IMG/VR virus record: IMGVR_UViG_3300044712_001255
Span: 124,001-188,000 of that record
Strand: one strand, 5' to 3'
DNA: 64,000 bases
The notes under the pieces are model-generated. The model was given only the letters and a program-made list of their open reading frames with translations. It was not told the origin of the DNA and made no database searches. Position 1 is the first letter of the stretch. Each line of letters begins with the position of its first letter. Shown piece after piece: positions 814-51,230 of this stretch. Position numbers and translations under genes: made by a program.

Positions 814-1926
814 ATGACAATTCAGGCTATTGATTTGGCAATTTCGTTCGATACGACTGGTTCAATGTATCCGTGTCTCACCCAGGTACGTCGTAACGTT
901 GCAAACCTCGTCAAGAAGATGATCGCGACTGTACAAGGTATTCGAATCGCAATCATTGCTCACGGTGACTACTGCGACGAGGGACACTCATACGTTACGA
1001 AGATTCTTGACTTCACCTCTGATGAAAAGAAGATCAGCGATTTCATTCAGGGCGTTGAACCCACTGGTGGTGGTGACGCTCCAGAGTGCTATGAGCTTGT
1101 GCTGCATCAGGCTCGTTCGTTGTCGTGGAAGTCAGGCAAGTCCAAGGTGCTTGTCATGATTGGCGACGACGTTCCTCATGCTCCCAACTACCCACTGAAC
1201 AAGGGACGAATCGACTGGCGCAATGAGCTCGGGCTTCTTACCGAGGCAGGCATCAGCGTTCACGGAGTCCACGCTCTTCCGGGATGTCGTCGACACTCAA
1301 AGTCATTCTATGATGAGATTGCACGAAAGACCGGCGGGTTTTATCTCACCCTCGATCAGTTCTCAACCGTCGAGGACCTGTTGATGGCGGTTGCCACAAA
1401 GCAGGATGGAGATGAGACGCTCAACAGCTATGTTGAGACTGTGAAGGCAGCAGGTCGCGCGACTCGTAACTTCATCAATATCGTGGGAACTCTCACTGGC
1501 AAGGCGATTGCTTGGGCAGGTCCAAAGGTCACCACGTCTGACGGCAAGGAACTCGTGCCTGTTCCTACTGGACGTTTCCAGGTGATGAAGGTGGATGAGA
1601 CTACGGTGATTGCAAACTTTGTGCAGGCACAGGGCGCAAGCTTCAAGCCGGGTCGTGGCTTCTATGAGCTGACGAAGTCCGAGAAGGTGCAGGGATACAA
1701 GGAGATCATCCTGCAGGACAAGGTCTCTGGTGATCTCTTCAATGGTTCGCAGGTACGTGATCTGTTGGGACTTCCGCATCATGAAGACGGACGCCTGTCC
1801 AGCAAGTCTTTGCTCGACAAGTACCGCATTTTTGTGCAGAGCACTTCCTACAATCGTAAGCTTGTAGGTGATACATACTTCTTGTACGAAACACCGGATT
1901 GGGAGCGGCTAGACGACGCCGCGTAA
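814..1926 (+). CDS. von Willebrand factor A domain protein
   Basis: MIDAS motif FDTTGSM, then TGGGDAPE and IGDDVPH; A-rich RBS upstream. Confidence 0.85.
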   Translation: MTIQAIDLAISFDTTGSMYPCLTQVRRNVANLVKKMIATVQGIRIAIIAHGDYCDEGHSYVTKILDFTSDEKKISDFIQGVEPTGGGDAPECYELVLHQARSLSWKSGKSKVLVMIGDDVPHAPNYPLNKGRIDWRNELGLLTEAGISVHGVHALPGCRRHSKSFYDEIARKTGGFYLTLDQFSTVEDLLMAVATKQDGDETLNSYVETVKAAGRATRNFINIVGTLTGKAIAWAGPKVTTSDGKELVPVPTGRFQVMKVDETTVIANFVQAQGASFKPGRGFYELTKSEKVQGYKEIILQDKVSGDLFNGSQVRDLLGLPHHEDGRLSSKSLLDKYRIFVQSTSYNRKLVGDTYFLYETPDWERLDDAA

Positions 1927-1983
1927 TCCAAGACGCTTTCTTGGAATTGATCAGGCCTCCTCGCGGGGCCTGATCTGTTTGTA
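1927..1983 (+). terminator. Tandem hairpins, probable intrinsic terminator
   Basis: TCCAAGA-N5-TCTTGGA (1927-1945), then GATCAGGCC-N9-GGCCTGATC (1949-1975) followed by TGTTTGT, right after the vWA stop. Confidence 0.7.
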
Positions 1984-2013
1984 CTGCACGTTGTTTTGGA
2001 GTATGGTCATAGC

Positions 2014-2940
2014 ATGCATACTCCAAGAATTTTCGTCCTCGTGCATCCAGCATACGCTGATATGATCTGTTACCCACAAACATTGAATGTGTGGGAGTCA
2101 TTTGAGCGTTGTGGCGCAATTGTCAAGTACGGCGATGATATTCATAGCATCGACCCACGGCCGGGAGACCAATTGGTGGGATATGGTCGCATGGATGATT
2201 GGCGTGTAGTTGCTGATAAGTTTCCACGTAATTGTAAGTGGAGTTACGTTGTAGACGAGTCAAGTTCATCAGTTGGAATCTACGAAAAAGCTCTTGGGTA
2301 TTTGCGTCTACTTGACATTGGCAATATGATTGTCACATATCAAAATCCAGTTCACCTTGAAAAACTGCGTTTCAACGGAATCAATTACATCATAATGCCG
2401 CAAACAATGCCGGCAATTCGTCCAAAGACTGAAAAGAAGCACGGAATTTTGCTCAGCGGTCAAGTTAGCACAAGCATTTATCCAACAAGAACAAGAGCAT
2501 GGTCTGCATTGGAACGTGGGCTAAAACGTCATGTGTATGCCCTTGAAACGCCAGGACAAGACATTTCAACGCGGCGACACAACGTTATTCGAAATGCGTA
2601 CTATGATCTGCTTGATTCGTGCAAGATGGGTATAGTGTGTAAGGCTGGAGTCAAGGATCGATTTGTTGCAAAGTACATTGAAATGGGAGCATGTCACATG
2701 CTTCCTGTTGGTGACTGTCCTTCATACATGCCAGATGAAATGAAGCGAGCTATGGTTGACATTGAAGGAATGTCTGACGTCCAAATCGTAGAAGAGGTTC
2801 GTCGTTTGCTTGAAGATGCACCAGACGAGCTCGAGGCACGTACTGCCACGTTTACGCACCAAGTGGAAAAACATTATCTAGCAACGCCCAATATGACACG
2901 AGTCATGAATGAATTAAGGGCACATGCAATGAAGGTGTAG
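2014..2940 (+). CDS. Glycosyltransferase-like protein (GT-B C-terminal half, YkvP/Glyco_trans_1_2-like)
   Basis: Y.DLLDSCKMGIVC...KYIEMGACHMLPVG resembles the K..E..A.G nucleotide-sugar-binding segment; ATG 2014 lies 6 nt after TATGGT. Confidence 0.5.
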   Translation: MHTPRIFVLVHPAYADMICYPQTLNVWESFERCGAIVKYGDDIHSIDPRPGDQLVGYGRMDDWRVVADKFPRNCKWSYVVDESSSSVGIYEKALGYLRLLDIGNMIVTYQNPVHLEKLRFNGINYIIMPQTMPAIRPKTEKKHGILLSGQVSTSIYPTRTRAWSALERGLKRHVYALETPGQDISTRRHNVIRNAYYDLLDSCKMGIVCKAGVKDRFVAKYIEMGACHMLPVGDCPSYMPDEMKRAMVDIEGMSDVQIVEEVRRLLEDAPDELEARTATFTHQVEKHYLATPNMTRVMNELRAHAMKV

Positions 2941-2963
2941 AAGTAAACTTGATGTGTTAGAAT
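2935..2963 (+). promoter_or_regulatory. Extended -10 promoter for a leaderless dnaE transcript
   Basis: TGtTAGAAT (TAGAAT 2958-2963) 7 nt before ATG 2971, no SD; GTGTAG 17 nt upstream. Confidence 0.55.
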
Positions 2964-2970
2964 TGGGTCC

Positions 2971-5900
2971 ATGAGTAGTATCAATGATGGGAAAATTGCC
3001 CCGGAGTGTAGGAGGCCGACTCGTTATGTCAGCCTTCACAATCACTCCGGGGCGTCTTAGCTGCGTTCGATGGATTCGGACCAGTTGAGATTCACCTTGA
3101 GTTCTGTGTTAAGAATGGCCTCGATTGTCACGCCATAACAGAACACGGCCATATGAATAGCTACCCAGCTGCGCAGCTTCTCTCAGAAGATTGGGCAAAA
3201 AAGGGTAAAACGTTCAAATTCATCCCAGGCGTTGAGGCGTATGTTCATCCTAATCTTGATGAATGGCGTAAGCTAAAGGTCGAATCTGAAGAAGAGAAGG
3301 CGGCTAAGAAGGCGGCTAAGAAACGTGGCGAAGAAGAAGACGGCGTATCTGATGTTGACACAAATAATGCGTTAGTCGTTGAAAATGAAGACGCTACGAA
3401 ACAACGTTATCAGAATCCAGTAAACCGTCGTCACCATCTCGTATTGTTACCCAAGAACGCTCGAGGGCTCAAGAAAATCTTTGAGCTTGTCTCCTTTGGA
3501 TACATCGACGGGTTCTATCGTTTTCCCAGGATTGACCTGAGAGAGATTAAGCGAATTCAAGGTGATCAAGGCGATATCATTGCGTCGACTGCGTGCATTG
3601 GTGGTCCACTGGCGTATGAAGTCTTTGGCAAGGTGGGAGACGTAGAGTGGGACGCCATGAACGCCGATCTGTTGCGAGATGAGTTTCGTGCCAAGCAGAT
3701 CATAAATGCAATCGGTAACACATATGATCAGTACGTAGACGCCCTAGGACTGGGGAATGTGTACCTCGAGTTGCAGTTCAACAGGCTTCCGCAACAGGAC
3801 CTAGTAAACCACGCGATCATCAGGTACGCCAAGGAAAATGGCCTGACAAATCAGCTCATTGTCACCTGTGATGCCCACTATCCTGGACCAGAGATGTGGT
3901 TGTACCGCGAGATGTACAAGAAGCTAGGCCACATGAACTACGAGGAAATGGACCCCTCCAAGCTTCCTAAGTCCAAGGATGACATCAAGGCTGAACTGTA
4001 TCCTAAGAACGCGGAACAGTTGTGGTCAGAGTACCAGGCGACCAAGGGTCGATGTGATCTGTATGCCGACATGGATGATTTGGTGTGTGATGCCATCGAG
4101 CGATCGTATGACGTGGCTCATAATGTCATCGGCGATGTACCCGCAGACAAGACTCCCAAGTTCCCCAAAGCAGTTATCCCTGAAGGCAAGACAGCATTTC
4201 AAGAGCTTGTAGAGCGAGCGAAGCGTGGGCTTATTACAAAGGGCCACGATAAGAAGCCAGAATACGTGTCTCGTCTCAAGGAAGAACTGCTTGTGATGAA
4301 AGAACTTGGCATTGCTGAGTATTTCGTTACTCTTGCAAGAGTTCTTGAACTAGCTCGCACGAAGGTGCTTGTCGGAACATGTCGTGGCTCAGGTGGTGGT
4401 TCGCTTGTTGTGTATTGCCTTGGCATTACCGATGTTGATCCTGTGAAGTACGGGTTGTACTTCTCTCGATTCTTGTCAGTGTATCGTAAGGGTATGCCTG
4501 ACGTTGACATTGATATCGATGATCGCGATACTGTTCTTGATCTTTTGCGAGAGGAGTTTGGTAATACCAACGTCGTTCCCATCTCCAACTATAACTTGTT
4601 GAAGCTCAAGAGCCTCACCAAGGATGTGTGTAAGTTCTTTGGCGTTTCGTTTGAAGATGCAAACGCAGCAACACGTACCGTTGAAGATGATGTGCGTAAG
4701 GCAACATTGAAGGAGGGCGATGACAAGAATTTGTTTGAGCTCAAGTTCGATGATGCCATGAAGCATAGTCCAAGTTATCGAGCATTCATAGAGAAGCTGG
4801 CCGAAGAACACCCAGCAGCGGTAGACGCAATCAAGGCATTGTACAAGGAACAGCGTTCACTTGGGCGTCATGCTGGCGGTGTGCTTGTGGTGGATGACCT
4901 TCGCACAAAGATGCCATTGATCACTTCTGGCGGTGAACCACAGTCACCGTGGGTGGAAGGCATGGCGGTGAAGCACCTTGAGAAGGTTGGCAATTTTGTC
5001 AAGTATGATTTGCTTGGTCTTCTTACGCTTCGATTGATTCGTCGAACTGTTGAGCTTATCCTAGAGCGTAAGACTGGCCGCACGCCATCGTTTGATGAAA
5101 TCAAGGCGTATTACAATGCCCATCTACATCCCGACGTTTTGGATTTTGATGATCCCAAGGTCTATGAGTATGTTTTCCACTCTGGACGGTGGGCAGGTGT
5201 GTTCCAGTTCACCCAACGGCCAACGCAGCGATTCTGCGCTCAGTGTAAGCCAAGCAACGTGACTGACTTGGCGGCCATTACGTCAATCTGGCGTCCTGGC
5301 CCACTCGCAGGTAAGATGCATGAGCTTTACGTCGATGCAAAGTTCAATAAGCCGTATGACTGGGGTCATCCACTGTTGAATGAGACCCTTGCTGACACAT
5401 ATGGTCTGCTGATCTTTCAGGAACAGATCATGTTGCTGGCCAACAAGGTTGCAGGATATGACCTTGCAAAGTGCGATGAAGTCCGTCGAGCAATCTTGAA
5501 GCGTTCTCTTGCAACTGGCGAATCTGCTAAGAAGGAAGCTCGGGAGCTCGAAGACAGCTTTGTGAAGGGTTGCGTTGGAAATGGCGTTCCTGAATCGATT
5601 GCTCGAAAGCTATACGCAAACATCCTTGCGTGGGGTGGTTACGGCTTCAATAAGGCACACGCAACAGGGTACGCAATGATTTCATATCAGTGCGCGTACT
5701 TGATGACATATTTCGAGGAAGAGTGGCTATGTTCTTACCTCGAAAGTATGAGCAGGAGTGAGGACAACAAGGCGAAAGCTTTTAGTGAGATACGGTCATT
5801 GGGTTATCAGATTGTCCCAATTGATATCAATCATGCTTCTTTCGGTTGGACAATCCTTGACGGCAAGCGTTTCATGCCATCGTTCTTGACTTGTAAAGAC

Positions 5901-6584
5901 GTTGGATCTGCTGCCGTTGAAGAGATTGTGCGTGAGCGACCGTATGAAAAAATTCAAGATGTGCTGTGGGATGAGCAGGGAGACTGGAAGCACAGCAAGT
6001 TCAACAGCAAGGCTCTTGCTGCGCTCATAAGAATCGGTGCATTCCAAAGTCTAGATTGCATTGGCGATGATGATGAACACTTGTTTGATTCATACGCACA
6101 CATGTATGAGGTCATCATCAATCACCTGAATGATATCAAAAAGCATCCAGTCAAAGAACCCCTAAAGGGCATGAATGAATTCTACAAGCTGTCTCGTGAG
6201 CTCAAGGGTCAGATTGAGCCGTGGGACCGTCGGCAACTTGCAGAGCACAGCATCAAACACTTTGGCTCAATCGATGTAATGAACCTCATTGATCCAACTG
6301 TACTGCAAGTGTTTCAACAAAAGGGTATTTCGTCAATTGACGAGTACGATGATGCTGGCATCTATTGGTTCTGCATCACAAAGACTACGCCGAAAAAGAC
6401 GAAGAACGGTAAACACTATTTGCTTCTCGAGGCCCAAGGTCCAGGTGGTAAAACACACAAGATTTACATGTGGGGATGGGACGGCCACCGACAATTCGAA
6501 AGTTACGCAGTGTGCTTTGCCGAGTTGAAGCAAAGTGACTTTGGTTTCGGTACACAGATGAGCAAGCTCCGCGAGCTTGAGTGA
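2971..6584 (+). CDS. dnaE: DNA polymerase III alpha subunit (family C); PHP N-terminus interrupted by 5 extra nt at 3058-3062
   Basis: 2971-3057 gives YVSLHNHSGAS; 3063 onward gives AFDG...AITEHGHMN, then RGSGGGS, MPDVDID, RHAGG, RPGP, FNKAHA and a C-terminal OB fold. Confidence 0.95.
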
Positions 6585-6588
6585 AAAA

Positions 6589-6849
6589 ATGTTTCCCGGT
6601 GACATGATTGAATGGGCATACACGGCGAATGACAAAGTAGTTCGTAAAGATGAAGAACTCTGGTCATCAACGATGATACAATGGGTGCCCATTGGGCACC
6701 CTGCACTTCTCGTTCACGTCGATGAACACACGTATTCGTGGTTAACCCCGAAGGGGTTGTTCCACGCGCGTGTGGATGATACTCCTCGATGGCTCGTGCC
6801 TCGAGCGGCGCGCCCTCGGTTGTTCCACGAACTCATAAATCTAGAATGA
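6589..6849 (+). CDS. PGDMIEW-family small protein, copy 2
   Basis: Paralogue of 390-656; starts 4 nt after the dnaE stop. Confidence 0.8.
   Translation: MFPGDMIEWAYTANDKVVRKDEELWSSTMIQWVPIGHPALLVHVDEHTYSWLTPKGLFHARVDDTPRWLVPRAARPRLFHELINLE
6756..6829 (+). CRISPR. Mini-array-like unit 2: repeat-35 nt spacer-truncated repeat
   Basis: R1 6756-6783 GTTGTTCCACGCGCGTGTGGATGATACT (27/28 identical to unit 1 R1); R2 starts at 6819 with GTTGTTCCACG, then diverges. Confidence 0.55.
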
Positions 6850-49436: not shown

Positions 49437-51230
49437 ATGAGCAAACTCTCGACCAAGGACGTCAAGGCACTCATCACCACGTGGTTCGCAACACCCGAGG
49501 CTCGCACGTTCTGGGAGTGCGCGTACGGAGAGAACCATTTCTATCGATCATTCGATGAATGGAAGAAACATTACGTCGATGATCCGAGTTACCTCGGCCT
49601 CACTGCGAAACAGTTTGAGGCGATGATGACGCGAGAAGATTTCTCGCGTCATCTTGTTGCCTGCGCCACGAACGGCAACATGTGGAATAGGGGCGAGAAG
49701 ATGAAAGTGGGCGCTGAGAATGGGTGGCAGTGTTACTTCGAGTACGAGTGTAAATGGACGCCTGAACCCATTAATGAATCGAGTCGATTCAACAAAAATC
49801 GCAATGTATATATCACCGATGTTGTCGGGTCTACCTTCAAGGCAGATGACCTCGGGTGGAGCGATGAAGTCCTTGTCAAGGAACTGTGCGCTGCAGGCAC
49901 AAAAGAACTCGACAGGTGCATCGAACGTATCTTCTATCCGAAGGTGGGACATATCGCCAACAATTACAGACTTCATGTCGTCACTGACCCCACTGACACT
50001 CGAGTCGTTGGGTGGTCGCTAAACGTGGACTGAGGGAAACACTATGATCTACACAAAAGAACAAATCGACGCCATGCTTGTCCTTGATTCGTCATCGACG
50101 CCCATCAATACACCTGTAGTGCTAAACTCACATGATTTAGCGAGTGTACTTCCGCTCATGCGCGGCAGTCGCTGCATTTACTTGGGCGAAGTCGCCGGCA
50201 TGACAGGTCATGTCGTCATCGCTGATACACACGGAGGAGTGTGGTGGGGGTACCACGATGACAACTTTTCGATCATACCGGAGCACTTGCTATGAAACTG
50301 TTCATACCCGCCTGTGGAAACCGCATCAAGCTGACGTCTGACTGGACGTTCACGCTGTACTTCGAGTCTCGTAATTTCACCCTCCTCAAACTCATCAAGG
50401 GCGTGAAGGAGTTCGCTGTCTACGGCGTGGATGGCAAGCTCGAGAGTGTCACGATGCCCGCTGGCACTACACTCGAGGTCGACAGGGTGTACATCCGTCA
50501 GTTCAGCAAGACCGCTGAGAATGTCGAGAGTGATTACGACAGCCTGACATTTAAGGTCCTCGATGGCAAGTACGCCAAGACTCGCTTCTGGGCAAAGCTC
50601 TCTGATGTCAATAACATCGAATGCGAGCTACCACCTGATGTTGCAGGTTCAAAGTGTCCACCCACGTCGCCAAAGAAGATGAAGATCGAGAAGGTGCGGG
50701 ATGAAATCAAGAGGGCAACGTGGTATGTCACTCGCGATGCCGGTAACGACCGGTGGGATTACATGCACCGACAGGCATGGCGCACCCTCGAGTTCGTGAC
50801 AATGCTGCGCAAGATTCTCACCGCCCACGCCAACAGACGTCGAGCTGTCATTGAAGCTGAGTTGCTCCTTTTGAAGGACGTCAAGGACTATAATGAGACG
50901 CGCATGGCCTTCTGCAAGATAACGCCAGAGTCAGACGTTGAACGCAAACGTGCGCTCACGTATGAGCTTCGAAACATGTGTGAATCGTTTCTACATGATC
51001 TTCCCAGCCTTCTTGATGAACATGCTGTGAAGCCTGTCCGAGATGATCAGGGTCGTCTCATCAGGAAGTGGGTGGGCAACACGGCACGTACGAAGTGCAC
51101 GTGGCGTAGTACTGGATATGTCACTGACGAACAGGTCTGCCTCGTCAAGGACGTGGCGCTGACGATCACCATGACGCCAGACGAGTCTGCGATCGAGAGC
51201 GTGATGCTGACGTGTGGGGAGGAACTGTGA
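49437..51230 (+). other. Accessory hypothetical ORFs 49437-50033, 50044-50295, 50292-51230
   Basis: Coupled ORFs; TATATT 5 nt before ATG 49437. Confidence 0.55.

Follow-up and report, generated by a model that had tools for sequence, protein, structure and literature searches.

Why does the dnaE gene of a giant phage, encoding the alpha subunit of DNA polymerase III, carry five extra nucleotides and an in-frame stop codon in the middle of its PHP motif? We addressed this question on a window of 64,000 nucleotides (positions 124,001 to 188,000 of the IMG/VR record IMGVR_UViG_3300044712_001255, whose full length is 324 kb), where the original prediction had described an essential dnaE broken by exactly five nucleotides. 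It had proposed a collapsed or lost group I intron, programmed recoding (a TCT-to-GCT hop or a -1 shift) or a sequencing error as possible reasons. The observation itself is confirmed. On computational evidence alone, the five bases are most likely real and skipped by the ribosome.

The gene is distributed over two frames. Frame A runs from ATG 2971 and reads MSSINDGKIAPECRRPTRYVSLHNHSGAS, with TCT at 3055-3057, followed by TAG at 3058-3060. Frame B is open from 3012, reads AFDGFGPVEIHLEF... from GCG 3063, and continues to the stop at 6582-6584. The elements of the locus are the following:

2971-3057, + strand: dnaE coding segment 1 (29 codons, MSS...HNHSGAS), carrying the HxH of the PHP motif, whose last codon, TCT 3055-3057, is the proposed take-off Ser codon.
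2998-3053, + strand: 5' stem-loop H1, with an outer stem that is an 11-bp perfect helix, GCCCCGGAGUG (2998-3008) with CACUCCGGGGC (3043-3053), plus an inner helix; it ends one base before the take-off codon.
3049-3052, + strand: G-run (GGGG), 2 nt 5' of the take-off codon and 7 nt 5' of the landing triplet.
3054-3091, + strand: 3' stem-loop H2 (16 bp, one bulged C, 5-nt loop), whose 5' arm holds the take-off codon, the stop and the whole gap; the five gap bases pair with AGUUG 3083-3087.
3058-3062, + strand: putative coding gap UAGCU, with UAG 3058-3060 as the in-frame stop and GCU 3060-3062 as the proposed landing triplet, which matches UCU at positions 2 and 3.
3063-6584, + strand: dnaE coding segment 2 (1173 codons plus stop), starting AFDGFGPVE... 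and holding the rest of PHP, the Pol III alpha core, the finger and the HHH_6 domain.

The two pieces were searched separately. Pfam profiles placed the PHP, DNA_pol3_alpha, finger and HHH_6 domains in order on frame B (E-values 8.6e-17, 7.8e-48, 1.2e-34 and 1.8e-08), identifying the gene as a DnaE-type DNA polymerase III alpha, but the PHP match starts only at profile position 11. The 29-aa piece alone gave no Pfam hit, being too short. However, it is homologous to the N-termini of intact relatives, sharing the pattern PEC..P.R.VSLHNHSG.S with the intact relative L003. In an alignment with six homologues, it ends in the column of the conserved Ser and segment 2 starts in the next column, with no overlap and no gap. 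Moreover, all of the 13 or more relatives first retrieved have an uninterrupted HxHxGxSxxDG. Exactly five nucleotides are therefore surplus, TAGCT 3058-3062 or, equivalently, TTAGC or CTTAG. The joined length of 29 + 1173 = 1202 aa matches the 1198-1203 aa usual in the family, and segment 2 is an uninterrupted frame, 44-67% identical to relatives over its full length. Stop-codon reassignment was rejected, because the two pieces lie in different frames and TAG ends 61 of 392 long ORFs. A split protein or reinitiation was also rejected, as frame B has no ATG, GTG or TTG between 3012 and 3152, its first being at 3153.

Are the five bases present in the phage? An independent 17.4-kb Logan contig from the probable source sample, at depth 11.5, matches window positions 1500-4338 with 0 differences and 0 gaps, although such contigs, unlike raw reads, cannot show minority alleles. 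A second sample with the phage, matching 43% of the sequence words, has no contig over 2706-3911 and does not cover the site, and no RNA run was found to hold the window. Searches for near-identical strains carrying this exact gap returned none in IMG/VR, JGI metagenomes or a set of 5.8 billion proteins, where the nearest were 65-67% (loci) and 55% (proteins) identical. Among GenBank phages there were no close DNA relatives, and protein-level hits were all 29% identical or less.

The break sits at the junction of two exceptional hairpins, which is far more than expected by chance. Positions 2995-3094 fold at -58.2 kcal/mol and form the most stable 100-nt segment sampled on the + strand of the 324-kb genome, where 100-nt windows average -22.9 +/- 6.1 and the best other window reaches -54.3 after local optimisation. 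Synonymous-codon randomisation gave -25.3 +/- 3.9, with 0 of 2000 randomised sequences as stable (z -8.5), whereas intact relatives fold at -12 to -22. H1 alone folds at -36.3 kcal/mol, against a synonymous-codon null of -13.3 +/- 4.1. H2 folds at -19.8 kcal/mol on the sense strand and -6.0 on the antisense strand (4 G-U pairs), and depends on the gap, since z against synonymous recoding is -5.5 with the gap and -1.5 when the five nucleotides are deleted. Of 1024 possible pentamers, TAGCT ties for fifth in stabilising H2 and is the joint best of those that begin with a stop. A scan of the genome for other recoding junctions returned none with comparable structure.

We then asked whether the same arrangement occurs elsewhere. 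Eighteen other metagenomic phage dnaE loci carry a gap right after the same Ser codon, so that 19 loci from different samples, including the window, present 13 distinct gaps of 5, 7, 9, 10 or 15 nt, all of which start with TAA, TAG or TGA. In eight of the ten loci with 9-15-nt gaps the last three gap bases are a Ser codon read by the same tRNA as the take-off codon (UCG/UCA, UCC/UCU, UCU/UCU and UCC/UCC), while the other two end in ACC, a two-of-three match to UCC. In the 5- and 7-nt gaps the last three bases match the take-off codon at two of three positions, except in one type that matches at one plus a wobble-equivalent third base. An equivalent 5' stem-loop is present in all 19 gap-bearing loci and absent from 79 intact ones. 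The 66 nt ending at the Ser codon fold at a mean of -31.7 in 16 gap-bearing loci and -8.9 in the 79 intact loci (Mann-Whitney U = 1, p = 1.8e-10). The stem covaries: 83% of cells are paired against 27-49% when partners are slid, 10 pairs change on both sides, and 0 of 500 shuffles reach the observed score. In contrast, the 3' hairpin is not supported as a family-wide feature, as it was found only in the window. Gap-bearing pairs differ by dN 0.08-0.19 and their downstream frames are intact, indicating that function is kept after gap acquisition, although dS is saturated and no dN/dS ratio can be given.

These gaps often occur next to a nuclease gene. A Phage_endo_I-like gene lies directly upstream of dnaE in 9 of 13 gap-bearing loci and 1 of 78 intact loci (p = 8.7e-9), but the stem-loop goes with the gap and not with the nuclease gene. 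Two of the metagenomic loci, L061 and L060, are 99.7% identical from the base after the gap onward, and in L061 a 1-kb cassette (nuclease gene, new 5' end, gap) replaces 124 nt. The tree requires at least 9 gains or losses. The window differs from this cassette family in several respects. The nuclease gene is absent from it and from the whole 324-kb record, as it is from three other gap-bearing loci with enough upstream sequence (L030, L066 and L105). The upstream ORF (1996-2940) was considered as a homing endonuclease and rejected, since it has no Pfam or PHROG hit and an Atlas search points to a glycosyltransferase-like protein. The N-terminus of DnaE in the window resembles that of the intact L003 rather than the cassette type (..NPVRVPxRFxGLHxHxGFS), and the 5' stem-loop of the window pairs in a different register (pairs sum to 69 instead of 72). 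Kinship with the cassette family therefore rests on analogy and is not shown by descent, and the gap of the window would be either an old, domesticated cassette remnant or an independent origin.

With fairly high confidence, we interpret UAGCU 3058-3062 as a programmed coding gap skipped by translational bypassing, a short 'stop-hop'. In this view, the ribosome would translate 29 codons and pause with peptidyl-tRNA-Ser on UCU 3055-3057 and UAG, followed by C, in the A site; the 3' arm of H1 would at that moment be held inside the ribosome, and re-zipping of H1 behind it would favour forward sliding of the mRNA, by analogy with the 5' stem-loop model for T4 gene 60. The retained tRNA-Ser would re-pair with GCU 3060-3062 through codon positions 2 and 3, and decoding would resume at GCG 3063 to give one 1202-aa DnaE with the canonical HNHSGAS-AF-DG motif. 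What the analysis demonstrates is the sequence, the motif spacing, by homology, and the conservation of the 5' stem-loop with the gap; the pause, the sliding, the re-pairing, any stimulatory effect of the stem-loop and the protein product itself are inferred, in the absence of protein, RNA or ribosome data for any of these genes. The landing triplet GCU is only near-cognate for tRNA-Ser, with a G-A mismatch at codon position 1, and the next fully cognate Ser codon downstream, UCG 3067-3069, would resume in a dead frame. Only 29 residues precede take-off. The G-run may pair with the anti-Shine-Dalgarno sequence, but this is inferred only from analogy with prfB and with the internal SD elements proposed for phiHau3 and gene 60, and its GG comes from the conserved Gly codon. 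By a further inference, the gap together with the recoded 5' end probably protects the cassette carriers from their own nuclease, as the gene 60 insert does for MobA.

The interpretation accompanying the original prediction is thus supported in part, since the TCT-to-GCT hop, which the evidence now favours, was one of its options, whereas a collapsed or lost group I intron is not supported. Programmed recoding with a different geometry is unlikely but deserves consideration: in a +2 shift, tRNA-Ser(UGA), which the phage encodes, would re-pair from UCU to UUA 3057-3059 through two Watson-Crick pairs and a central G-U and resume at GCU, whereas a -1 shift could be stimulated by a strong downstream hairpin such as H2. 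Both reach the right frame, giving HNHSGAS-A-AFDG and HNHSGAS-LA-AFDG, respectively, and two intact family members (P0045 and P0051) have one extra residue between HxH and S, so that the spacing upstream of the Ser is not absolutely fixed. However, S-x-x-D-G spacing is invariant in every intact relative examined, there is no X XXY YYZ slippery heptamer, and H2 begins at the P-site codon with no spacer. Single-step shifts also cannot explain the sister cases with 9-, 10- and 15-nt gaps that contain two stops, whereas bypassing explains all gap lengths. An inactivating insertion, in a defective or recently mutated lineage or in a dnaE made dispensable by another polymerase, with hairpins of unrelated role, is similarly improbable. 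It would be compatible with the single sample at about 11x that supports this exact sequence, with the intact state of the closest relatives L002 and L003, with the tendency of quasi-palindromes to be indel hotspots, and with a small PolA-like gene elsewhere in the genome, because of which the essentiality of dnaE is plausible but not shown. Nevertheless, both coding pieces are intact and conserved, the hairpins are built from synonymous choices that preserve both reading frames, templated hairpin correction would have inserted CAACT and not TAGCT, and the same design recurs in 18 other loci whose genes stay under purifying selection.

A sequencing or assembly artefact is very unlikely, even though the record is a metagenome assembly compared here with contigs only. 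Two independent assemblers give the identical sequence over 2.8 kb, a 5-nt non-repetitive insertion is not a typical short-read error, the insert fits an RNA hairpin and a stop-codon design, and equivalent gaps occur in many unrelated assemblies, some seen in two samples (L028/L029 and L032/L033). Removal at the RNA level, by a remnant or miniature intron or by endonuclease-plus-ligase editing, is equally doubtful. The site is flanked by hairpins and relatives carry large insertions in dnaE, but these are ORF-bearing and lie at other positions. Five nucleotides are far below any self-splicing intron, group I and group II introns having a catalytic RNA core of hundreds of nucleotides, and no Rfam match was found in 2700-3400 at E <= 10. 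Finally, the gap bases are paired inside a stem, not in a loop or bulge, and the resemblance between take-off codon and landing triplet across the 13 gap types is what tRNA re-pairing predicts and has no role in splicing.

A broader reading, which we consider probable, is that phage dnaE genes host a widespread class of mobile translational-bypass cassettes, each made of a free-standing Phage_endo_I-like nuclease gene, a recoded dnaE 5' end forming a covarying 5' stem-loop, and a stop-led 5-15 nt gap after the PHP-motif Ser codon. Literature searches for a bypass in dnaE found no description of it. This would be a second, independent invention of the gene 60/MobA strategy, and would supply the first natural in-frame stop-hops and the shortest natural programmed hop (5 nt), the window being a nuclease-free, possibly convergent instance reinforced by a second hairpin. 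Efficient bypassing has essentially one well-studied natural model, T4 gene 60, in addition to mitochondrial byps and one candidate in Streptomyces phages. If our reading is right, the 13 natural gap variants, both in-frame and frame-shifting, would make the proposed forward sliding by mRNA re-pairing behind the ribosome directly testable with natural sequences, and would show that nuclease genes repeatedly use ribosome hopping to hide an immunity insert inside an invariant catalytic motif. Gene callers truncate or mis-start about a quarter of this polymerase family (34 of the 120 nearest clusters), and such 'broken' essential genes in phage assemblies should not be dismissed as errors.

The closest known system is the T4 gene 60 bypass with its MobA homing-endonuclease cassette. 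In both, a non-coding block interrupts an invariant metal-binding motif near the 5' end of a replication gene (essential, with the reservation made above for dnaE), a stop immediately follows a take-off codon lying in or at a stem-loop and preceded by a 5' stem-loop, and the landing triplet resembles the take-off codon. In relatives of the window, a free-standing nuclease gene sits directly upstream and the whole unit behaves as a mobile cassette that can later lose it. However, the dnaE system, which would work in a similar way, is not a member of the gene 60 family: the host gene is not a topoisomerase gene, the nuclease is Phage_endo_I-like and not MobA, the gap is 5-15 nt instead of 50 nt, the 5' stem-loop is strongly conserved whereas in the gene 60 family it is not, and no sequence or Rfam homology was found; the window itself has no nuclease gene and only a near-cognate landing triplet. 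Candidate short-gap bypassing in terminase genes of Streptomyces phage phiHau3 and prophages likewise involves short blocks (7 and 10 nt after UUA) that split a conserved phage gene at a highly conserved junction, with a slow A-site codon after take-off, strong local structure and an SD-like element 5' of the gap, and the same argument from junction conservation for bypass rather than a +/-1 shift. [quoted passage not shown] In synthetic stop-hops in E. coli (Weiss, Dunn, Atkins and Gesteland 1987) and mitochondrial byp elements of Magnusiomyces, peptidyl-tRNA hops over a stop or an unused codon to a matched or two-of-three matched triplet a few nucleotides downstream, and in-frame dnaE cases such as UCU UGA AAA UCU and UCC UAG UGA UCC have exactly the stop-hop layout. 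Stop-hops were engineered and inefficient, a 2016 review stating that no natural in-frame one was known, and byps are 27-55 nt, mitochondrial and largely context-independent, whereas the dnaE gaps come with a dedicated, covarying 5' stem-loop. Finally, prfB (+1) and dnaX (-1) frameshifting share a recoding site at a stop codon with a G-rich SD-like run just upstream (prfB) or a downstream hairpin (dnaX), but in the window a +1 shift enters a dead frame with a stop at 3084-3086, a -1 shift has no slippery heptamer and would add two residues to the motif, and the net movement needed is +5.

The 324,468-bp IMG/VR virus record to which the window belongs (as bases 124001-188000) derives from a rhizosphere metagenome and represents a jumbo phage with 46.6% G+C, 47 tRNA genes and a tmRNA. 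In the complete record (G000), the tmRNA (tag ANDNATVLRAAA), 46 ordinary tRNAs including four tRNA-Ser, and an ARAGORN call of a tRNA with anticodon UUA, which is a possible ochre suppressor or a false positive, were found at 49473-49828, 213410-283308 and 313007-313079, outside the window. A small PolA-family open frame also lies outside the window (G000:96153-96869; 422 aa, 40 bits to DNA_pol_A positions 111-376), indicating that dnaE is not the only polymerase-like gene in this genome.

From the ATG at 2971, one frame reads MSSINDGKIAPECRRPTRYVSLHNHSGAS and then meets a TAG at 3058-3060. The frame one base behind it is open from 3012, reads AFDGFGPVEIHLEF... from 3063, and continues for 1173 codons to the stop at 6582-6584. 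This long frame carries the PHP, Pol III alpha core, finger and HHH_6 domains, but its match to the PHP profile starts only at profile position 11. All relatives first fetched (44-67% identical) have an uninterrupted HxHxGxSxxDG, and in an alignment the first piece ends in the column of the conserved Ser while the second begins in the next column. Exactly five bases are therefore surplus, TAGCT at 3058-3062, and the joined length of 1202 aa matches the family norm of 1198-1203 aa. The original prediction, which had noted a dnaE gene broken by exactly five extra nucleotides in the PHP motif, was correct in this observation. The spacing upstream of the Ser is not absolutely invariant, since intact members of two protein clusters of the family (P0045 and P0051) read HxHTSVGSPYDG or HxHTGVGSPFDG, with one extra residue between HxH and the Ser.

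An artefact is very unlikely. An independently built Logan contig (17.4 kb, depth 11.5) from the probable source sample matches window 1500-4338 with no difference and no gap. This does not represent independent data, and contigs hide minority alleles, but it does exclude an assembler-specific slip. A second sample contains the phage at low depth without covering the site. The exact gap of the window is supported by one sample. Moreover, the genome is not riddled with broken genes: dnaE has the longest start-less 5' extension of 392 long ORFs, and a scan for a stop followed by another frame open for at least 150 codons with no nearby start found nothing else comparable.

The break sits in an extraordinary predicted RNA structure, where two hairpins meet exactly at the site:
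2998-3053, hairpin H1, an 11-bp perfect outer stem plus an inner helix, folding at -36.3 kcal/mol.
3054-3091, hairpin H2, 16 bp, folding at -19.8 kcal/mol, whose 5' arm contains the Ser codon, the stop and all five extra bases.

The 100 nt at 2995-3094 fold at -58.2 kcal/mol, whereas 100-nt windows across the + strand of the genome average -22.9 +/- 6.1, and the best other window, after local optimisation of the top loci, reaches -54.3. When the amino acids were kept and synonymous codons were drawn from the genome's own usage, the mean was -25.3 +/- 3.9 and none of 2000 draws reached the observed value (z -8.5). The equivalent stretch in intact relatives folds at -12 to -22. H2 is specific to the sense strand (-19.8 against -6.0, with four G-U pairs) and is significant only when the five bases are present (z -5.5 with them and -1.5 without them). 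Among all 1024 pentamers placed at that spot, TAGCT ties for fifth in stability; the four better ones begin with C and give no stop, so TAGCT and TAACT are the best pentamers that start with a stop. A hairpin-templated mutation would instead have inserted CAACT. The structure is thus selected, it acts at the RNA level, and the insert is part of it. A search of Rfam returned nothing similar. The same genome-wide folding scan also revealed two G+C-rich hairpins just after the dnaE stop (window 6676-6775; GGGUGCCC...GGGCACCC and AACCCC...GGGGUU), which give one of the most stable 100-nt windows of the genome (-47.4), are probably terminators, and lie inside the small ORF 6577-6849. A repeated, highly structured element (GGGTCCCTCACG...GGATAGGGG...) was likewise observed at several intergenic places in a more G+C-rich part of the genome, outside the window (G000:240742, 225621 and 242081).

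In order to determine whether the same arrangement recurs across the family, we considered the 120 nearest protein clusters (48-55% identity), of which 34 have gene calls that start downstream of the HxH motif. We read the DNA of ten of these and of 80 further IMG/VR loci, and found 18 more loci (loci are designated by L numbers hereafter) with a short block right after the same Ser codon. These sets are not a random sample, as the IMG/VR set favoured full-length matches and the protein set was chosen by truncated N-termini, and the prevalence figures are accordingly rough.

Gaps found after the conserved Ser codon of dnaE, given as take-off codon, gap, resume codon
TCG, TAACG, ACC (five loci; L112 resumes at ACT)
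TCG, TAACTTG, GCT
TCG, TAGCTTG, GCT
AGT, TAAATGC, ACT (two samples)
TCG, TAGGAATCA, CCC
TCC, TAAGTAACC, ACG
TCC, TGAATAACC, ACG
TCT, TGAAAATCT, ACC
TCC, TAGTGATCC, CCA
TCT, TAAAGATCC, GCC
TCC, TAGAGATCT, CCT
TCC, TAGTAAATCT, CCA
TCG, TGAAGGCACTAATCA, CCC
TCG, TAGGGGATTTAATCA, CCC
TCT, TAGCT, GCG (the window)

The gaps are 5, 7, 9, 10 and 15 nt long, every one begins with a stop, and several contain two stops. The last three gap bases would be the landing triplet. In eight of the ten loci with 9-15-nt gaps they are a Ser codon readable by the same tRNA as the take-off codon, and in the other two (L061 and L066) they are ACC, a 2-of-3 match to UCC. In the 5- and 7-nt gaps they match the take-off codon at two of three positions, except in one type (L028), which matches at one position plus a wobble-equivalent third base. 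A random triplet reaches two of three with a probability of about 0.16-0.25, and resemblance in thirteen types out of thirteen, counting the weaker L028 type, is what re-pairing of a retained peptidyl-tRNA predicts. Simple +/-1 frameshifting cannot explain the in-frame gaps, and readthrough cannot explain the frame-shifting gaps or the double-stop gaps, whereas bypassing explains all of them. For the window, nevertheless, a +2 or -1 alternative that adds one or two residues is not excluded, and its landing triplet is only near-cognate.

The gap is accompanied by a conserved 5' stem-loop. The 66 nt that end at the Ser codon fold at a mean of -31.7 kcal/mol in the 16 gap-bearing loci first tested, while in 79 intact loci the mean is -8.9 and the best is -22.9 (Mann-Whitney U = 1, p = 1.8e-10); the three loci added later fold at -22.6 to -30.4. 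In 14 cassette sequences the stem keeps one register while its sequence varies: 83% of cells are paired, against 27-49% when partners are slid, ten pairs change on both sides, and 0 of 500 shuffles reach the observed score. The 3' arm runs into the take-off codon. The stem-loop follows the gap and not the nuclease gene described below, being present in gap-bearing loci without a nuclease gene (the window, L030, L066 and L105) and absent in the one intact locus that has one (L098). In contrast, the 3' hairpin H2 is peculiar to the window.

A Phage_endo_I-like gene lies directly upstream of dnaE in 9 of the 13 gap-bearing loci that have enough upstream sequence, but in only 1 of 78 intact loci (Fisher p = 8.7e-9). 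L061 (9-nt gap) and L060 (intact) are 99.7% identical over 5 kb starting at the base after the gap, and 97.8% identical upstream; between these stretches, 1017 nt in L061 replace 124 nt of L060 and comprise the nuclease gene, a new dnaE start with the stem-loop, and the gap. On a tree of the first 450 residues the trait needs at least 9 gains or losses. Gap-bearing pairs have diverged to synonymous saturation, with dN of only 0.08-0.19 and intact frames, and the polymerase therefore stays under purifying selection with the gap in place. Other insertions and nuclease genes occur in and around dnaE. The two closest relatives of the window have dnaE split at other positions by ORF-bearing insertions: in L002 (4470-5769; same as L015) a 326-aa ORF with a weak Phage_endo_I hit sits at residue ~471-488, and in L019 (4740-7823; same as L003) a 654-aa HTH_7/resolvase-like ORF plus a sulfotransferase sit at residue ~672-675. 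In the gap-bearing L102, L110 and L112, the dnaE matches span 4.8-5.1 kb instead of ~3.6 kb, so that, judging from this span, these genes carry a further large insertion downstream (intron, intein or nuclease gene). In L034 an Endonuclease_7 gene (581-1183) lies directly upstream of an intact dnaE that the gene caller mis-started at MFSPYDG; a different nuclease family thus occupies the same position without a gap.

The window itself has no nuclease gene of this kind anywhere in the record. The two genes upstream of its dnaE (814-2940) encode a VWA-domain protein and, directly upstream, a glycosyltransferase-like protein, and have no counterpart upstream of dnaE in relatives, whereas the downstream genes 6577, 7701 and 8413 are syntenic with L002; the 5' flank of dnaE is a variable region. 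The N-terminus resembles that of the intact relative L003 rather than the cassette N-terminus, the stem-loop pairs in a different register, the extra hairpin H2 is present, and the nearest relatives, L002 and L003, are intact. The window is therefore either a long-domesticated remnant or an independent, convergent solution. Either way, it has the full functional signature: a Ser take-off codon, an immediate stop, a landing triplet that repeats codon positions 2 and 3, and a very strong 5' stem-loop.

All the evidence is computational. We regard the gap, the stop, the hairpins and their selection, the family-wide pattern and the mobility of the cassette as established by these analyses, while the course of translation, including the product itself, is inferred. 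In this view, the ribosome would pause on UCU/UAG, refolding of H1 behind it would favour forward sliding, as argued for the 5' stem-loop of gene 60, tRNA-Ser would re-pair on GCU, and decoding would resume at GCG. The phage itself encodes the GGA and UGA isoacceptors of tRNA-Ser. More speculatively, the G-run at 3049-3052 may act like the internal Shine-Dalgarno elements discussed for prfB, gene 60 and phiHau3. The interpretation offered in the original prediction is partly supported, programmed recoding by a hop over the stop being one of the options it raised.

Full-text searches, in a library that is incomplete, found no report of a dnaE bypass, and a 2016 recoding review states that no natural in-frame stop-hop was known. 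The closest systems are T4 gene 60 with MobA, the 7-10-nt blocks in Streptomyces phage terminase genes, and synthetic stop-hops. The layout of the dnaE cassette matches the logic of gene 60 with MobA, where the insert in an invariant motif blocks self-cleavage and is bypassed by the ribosome.
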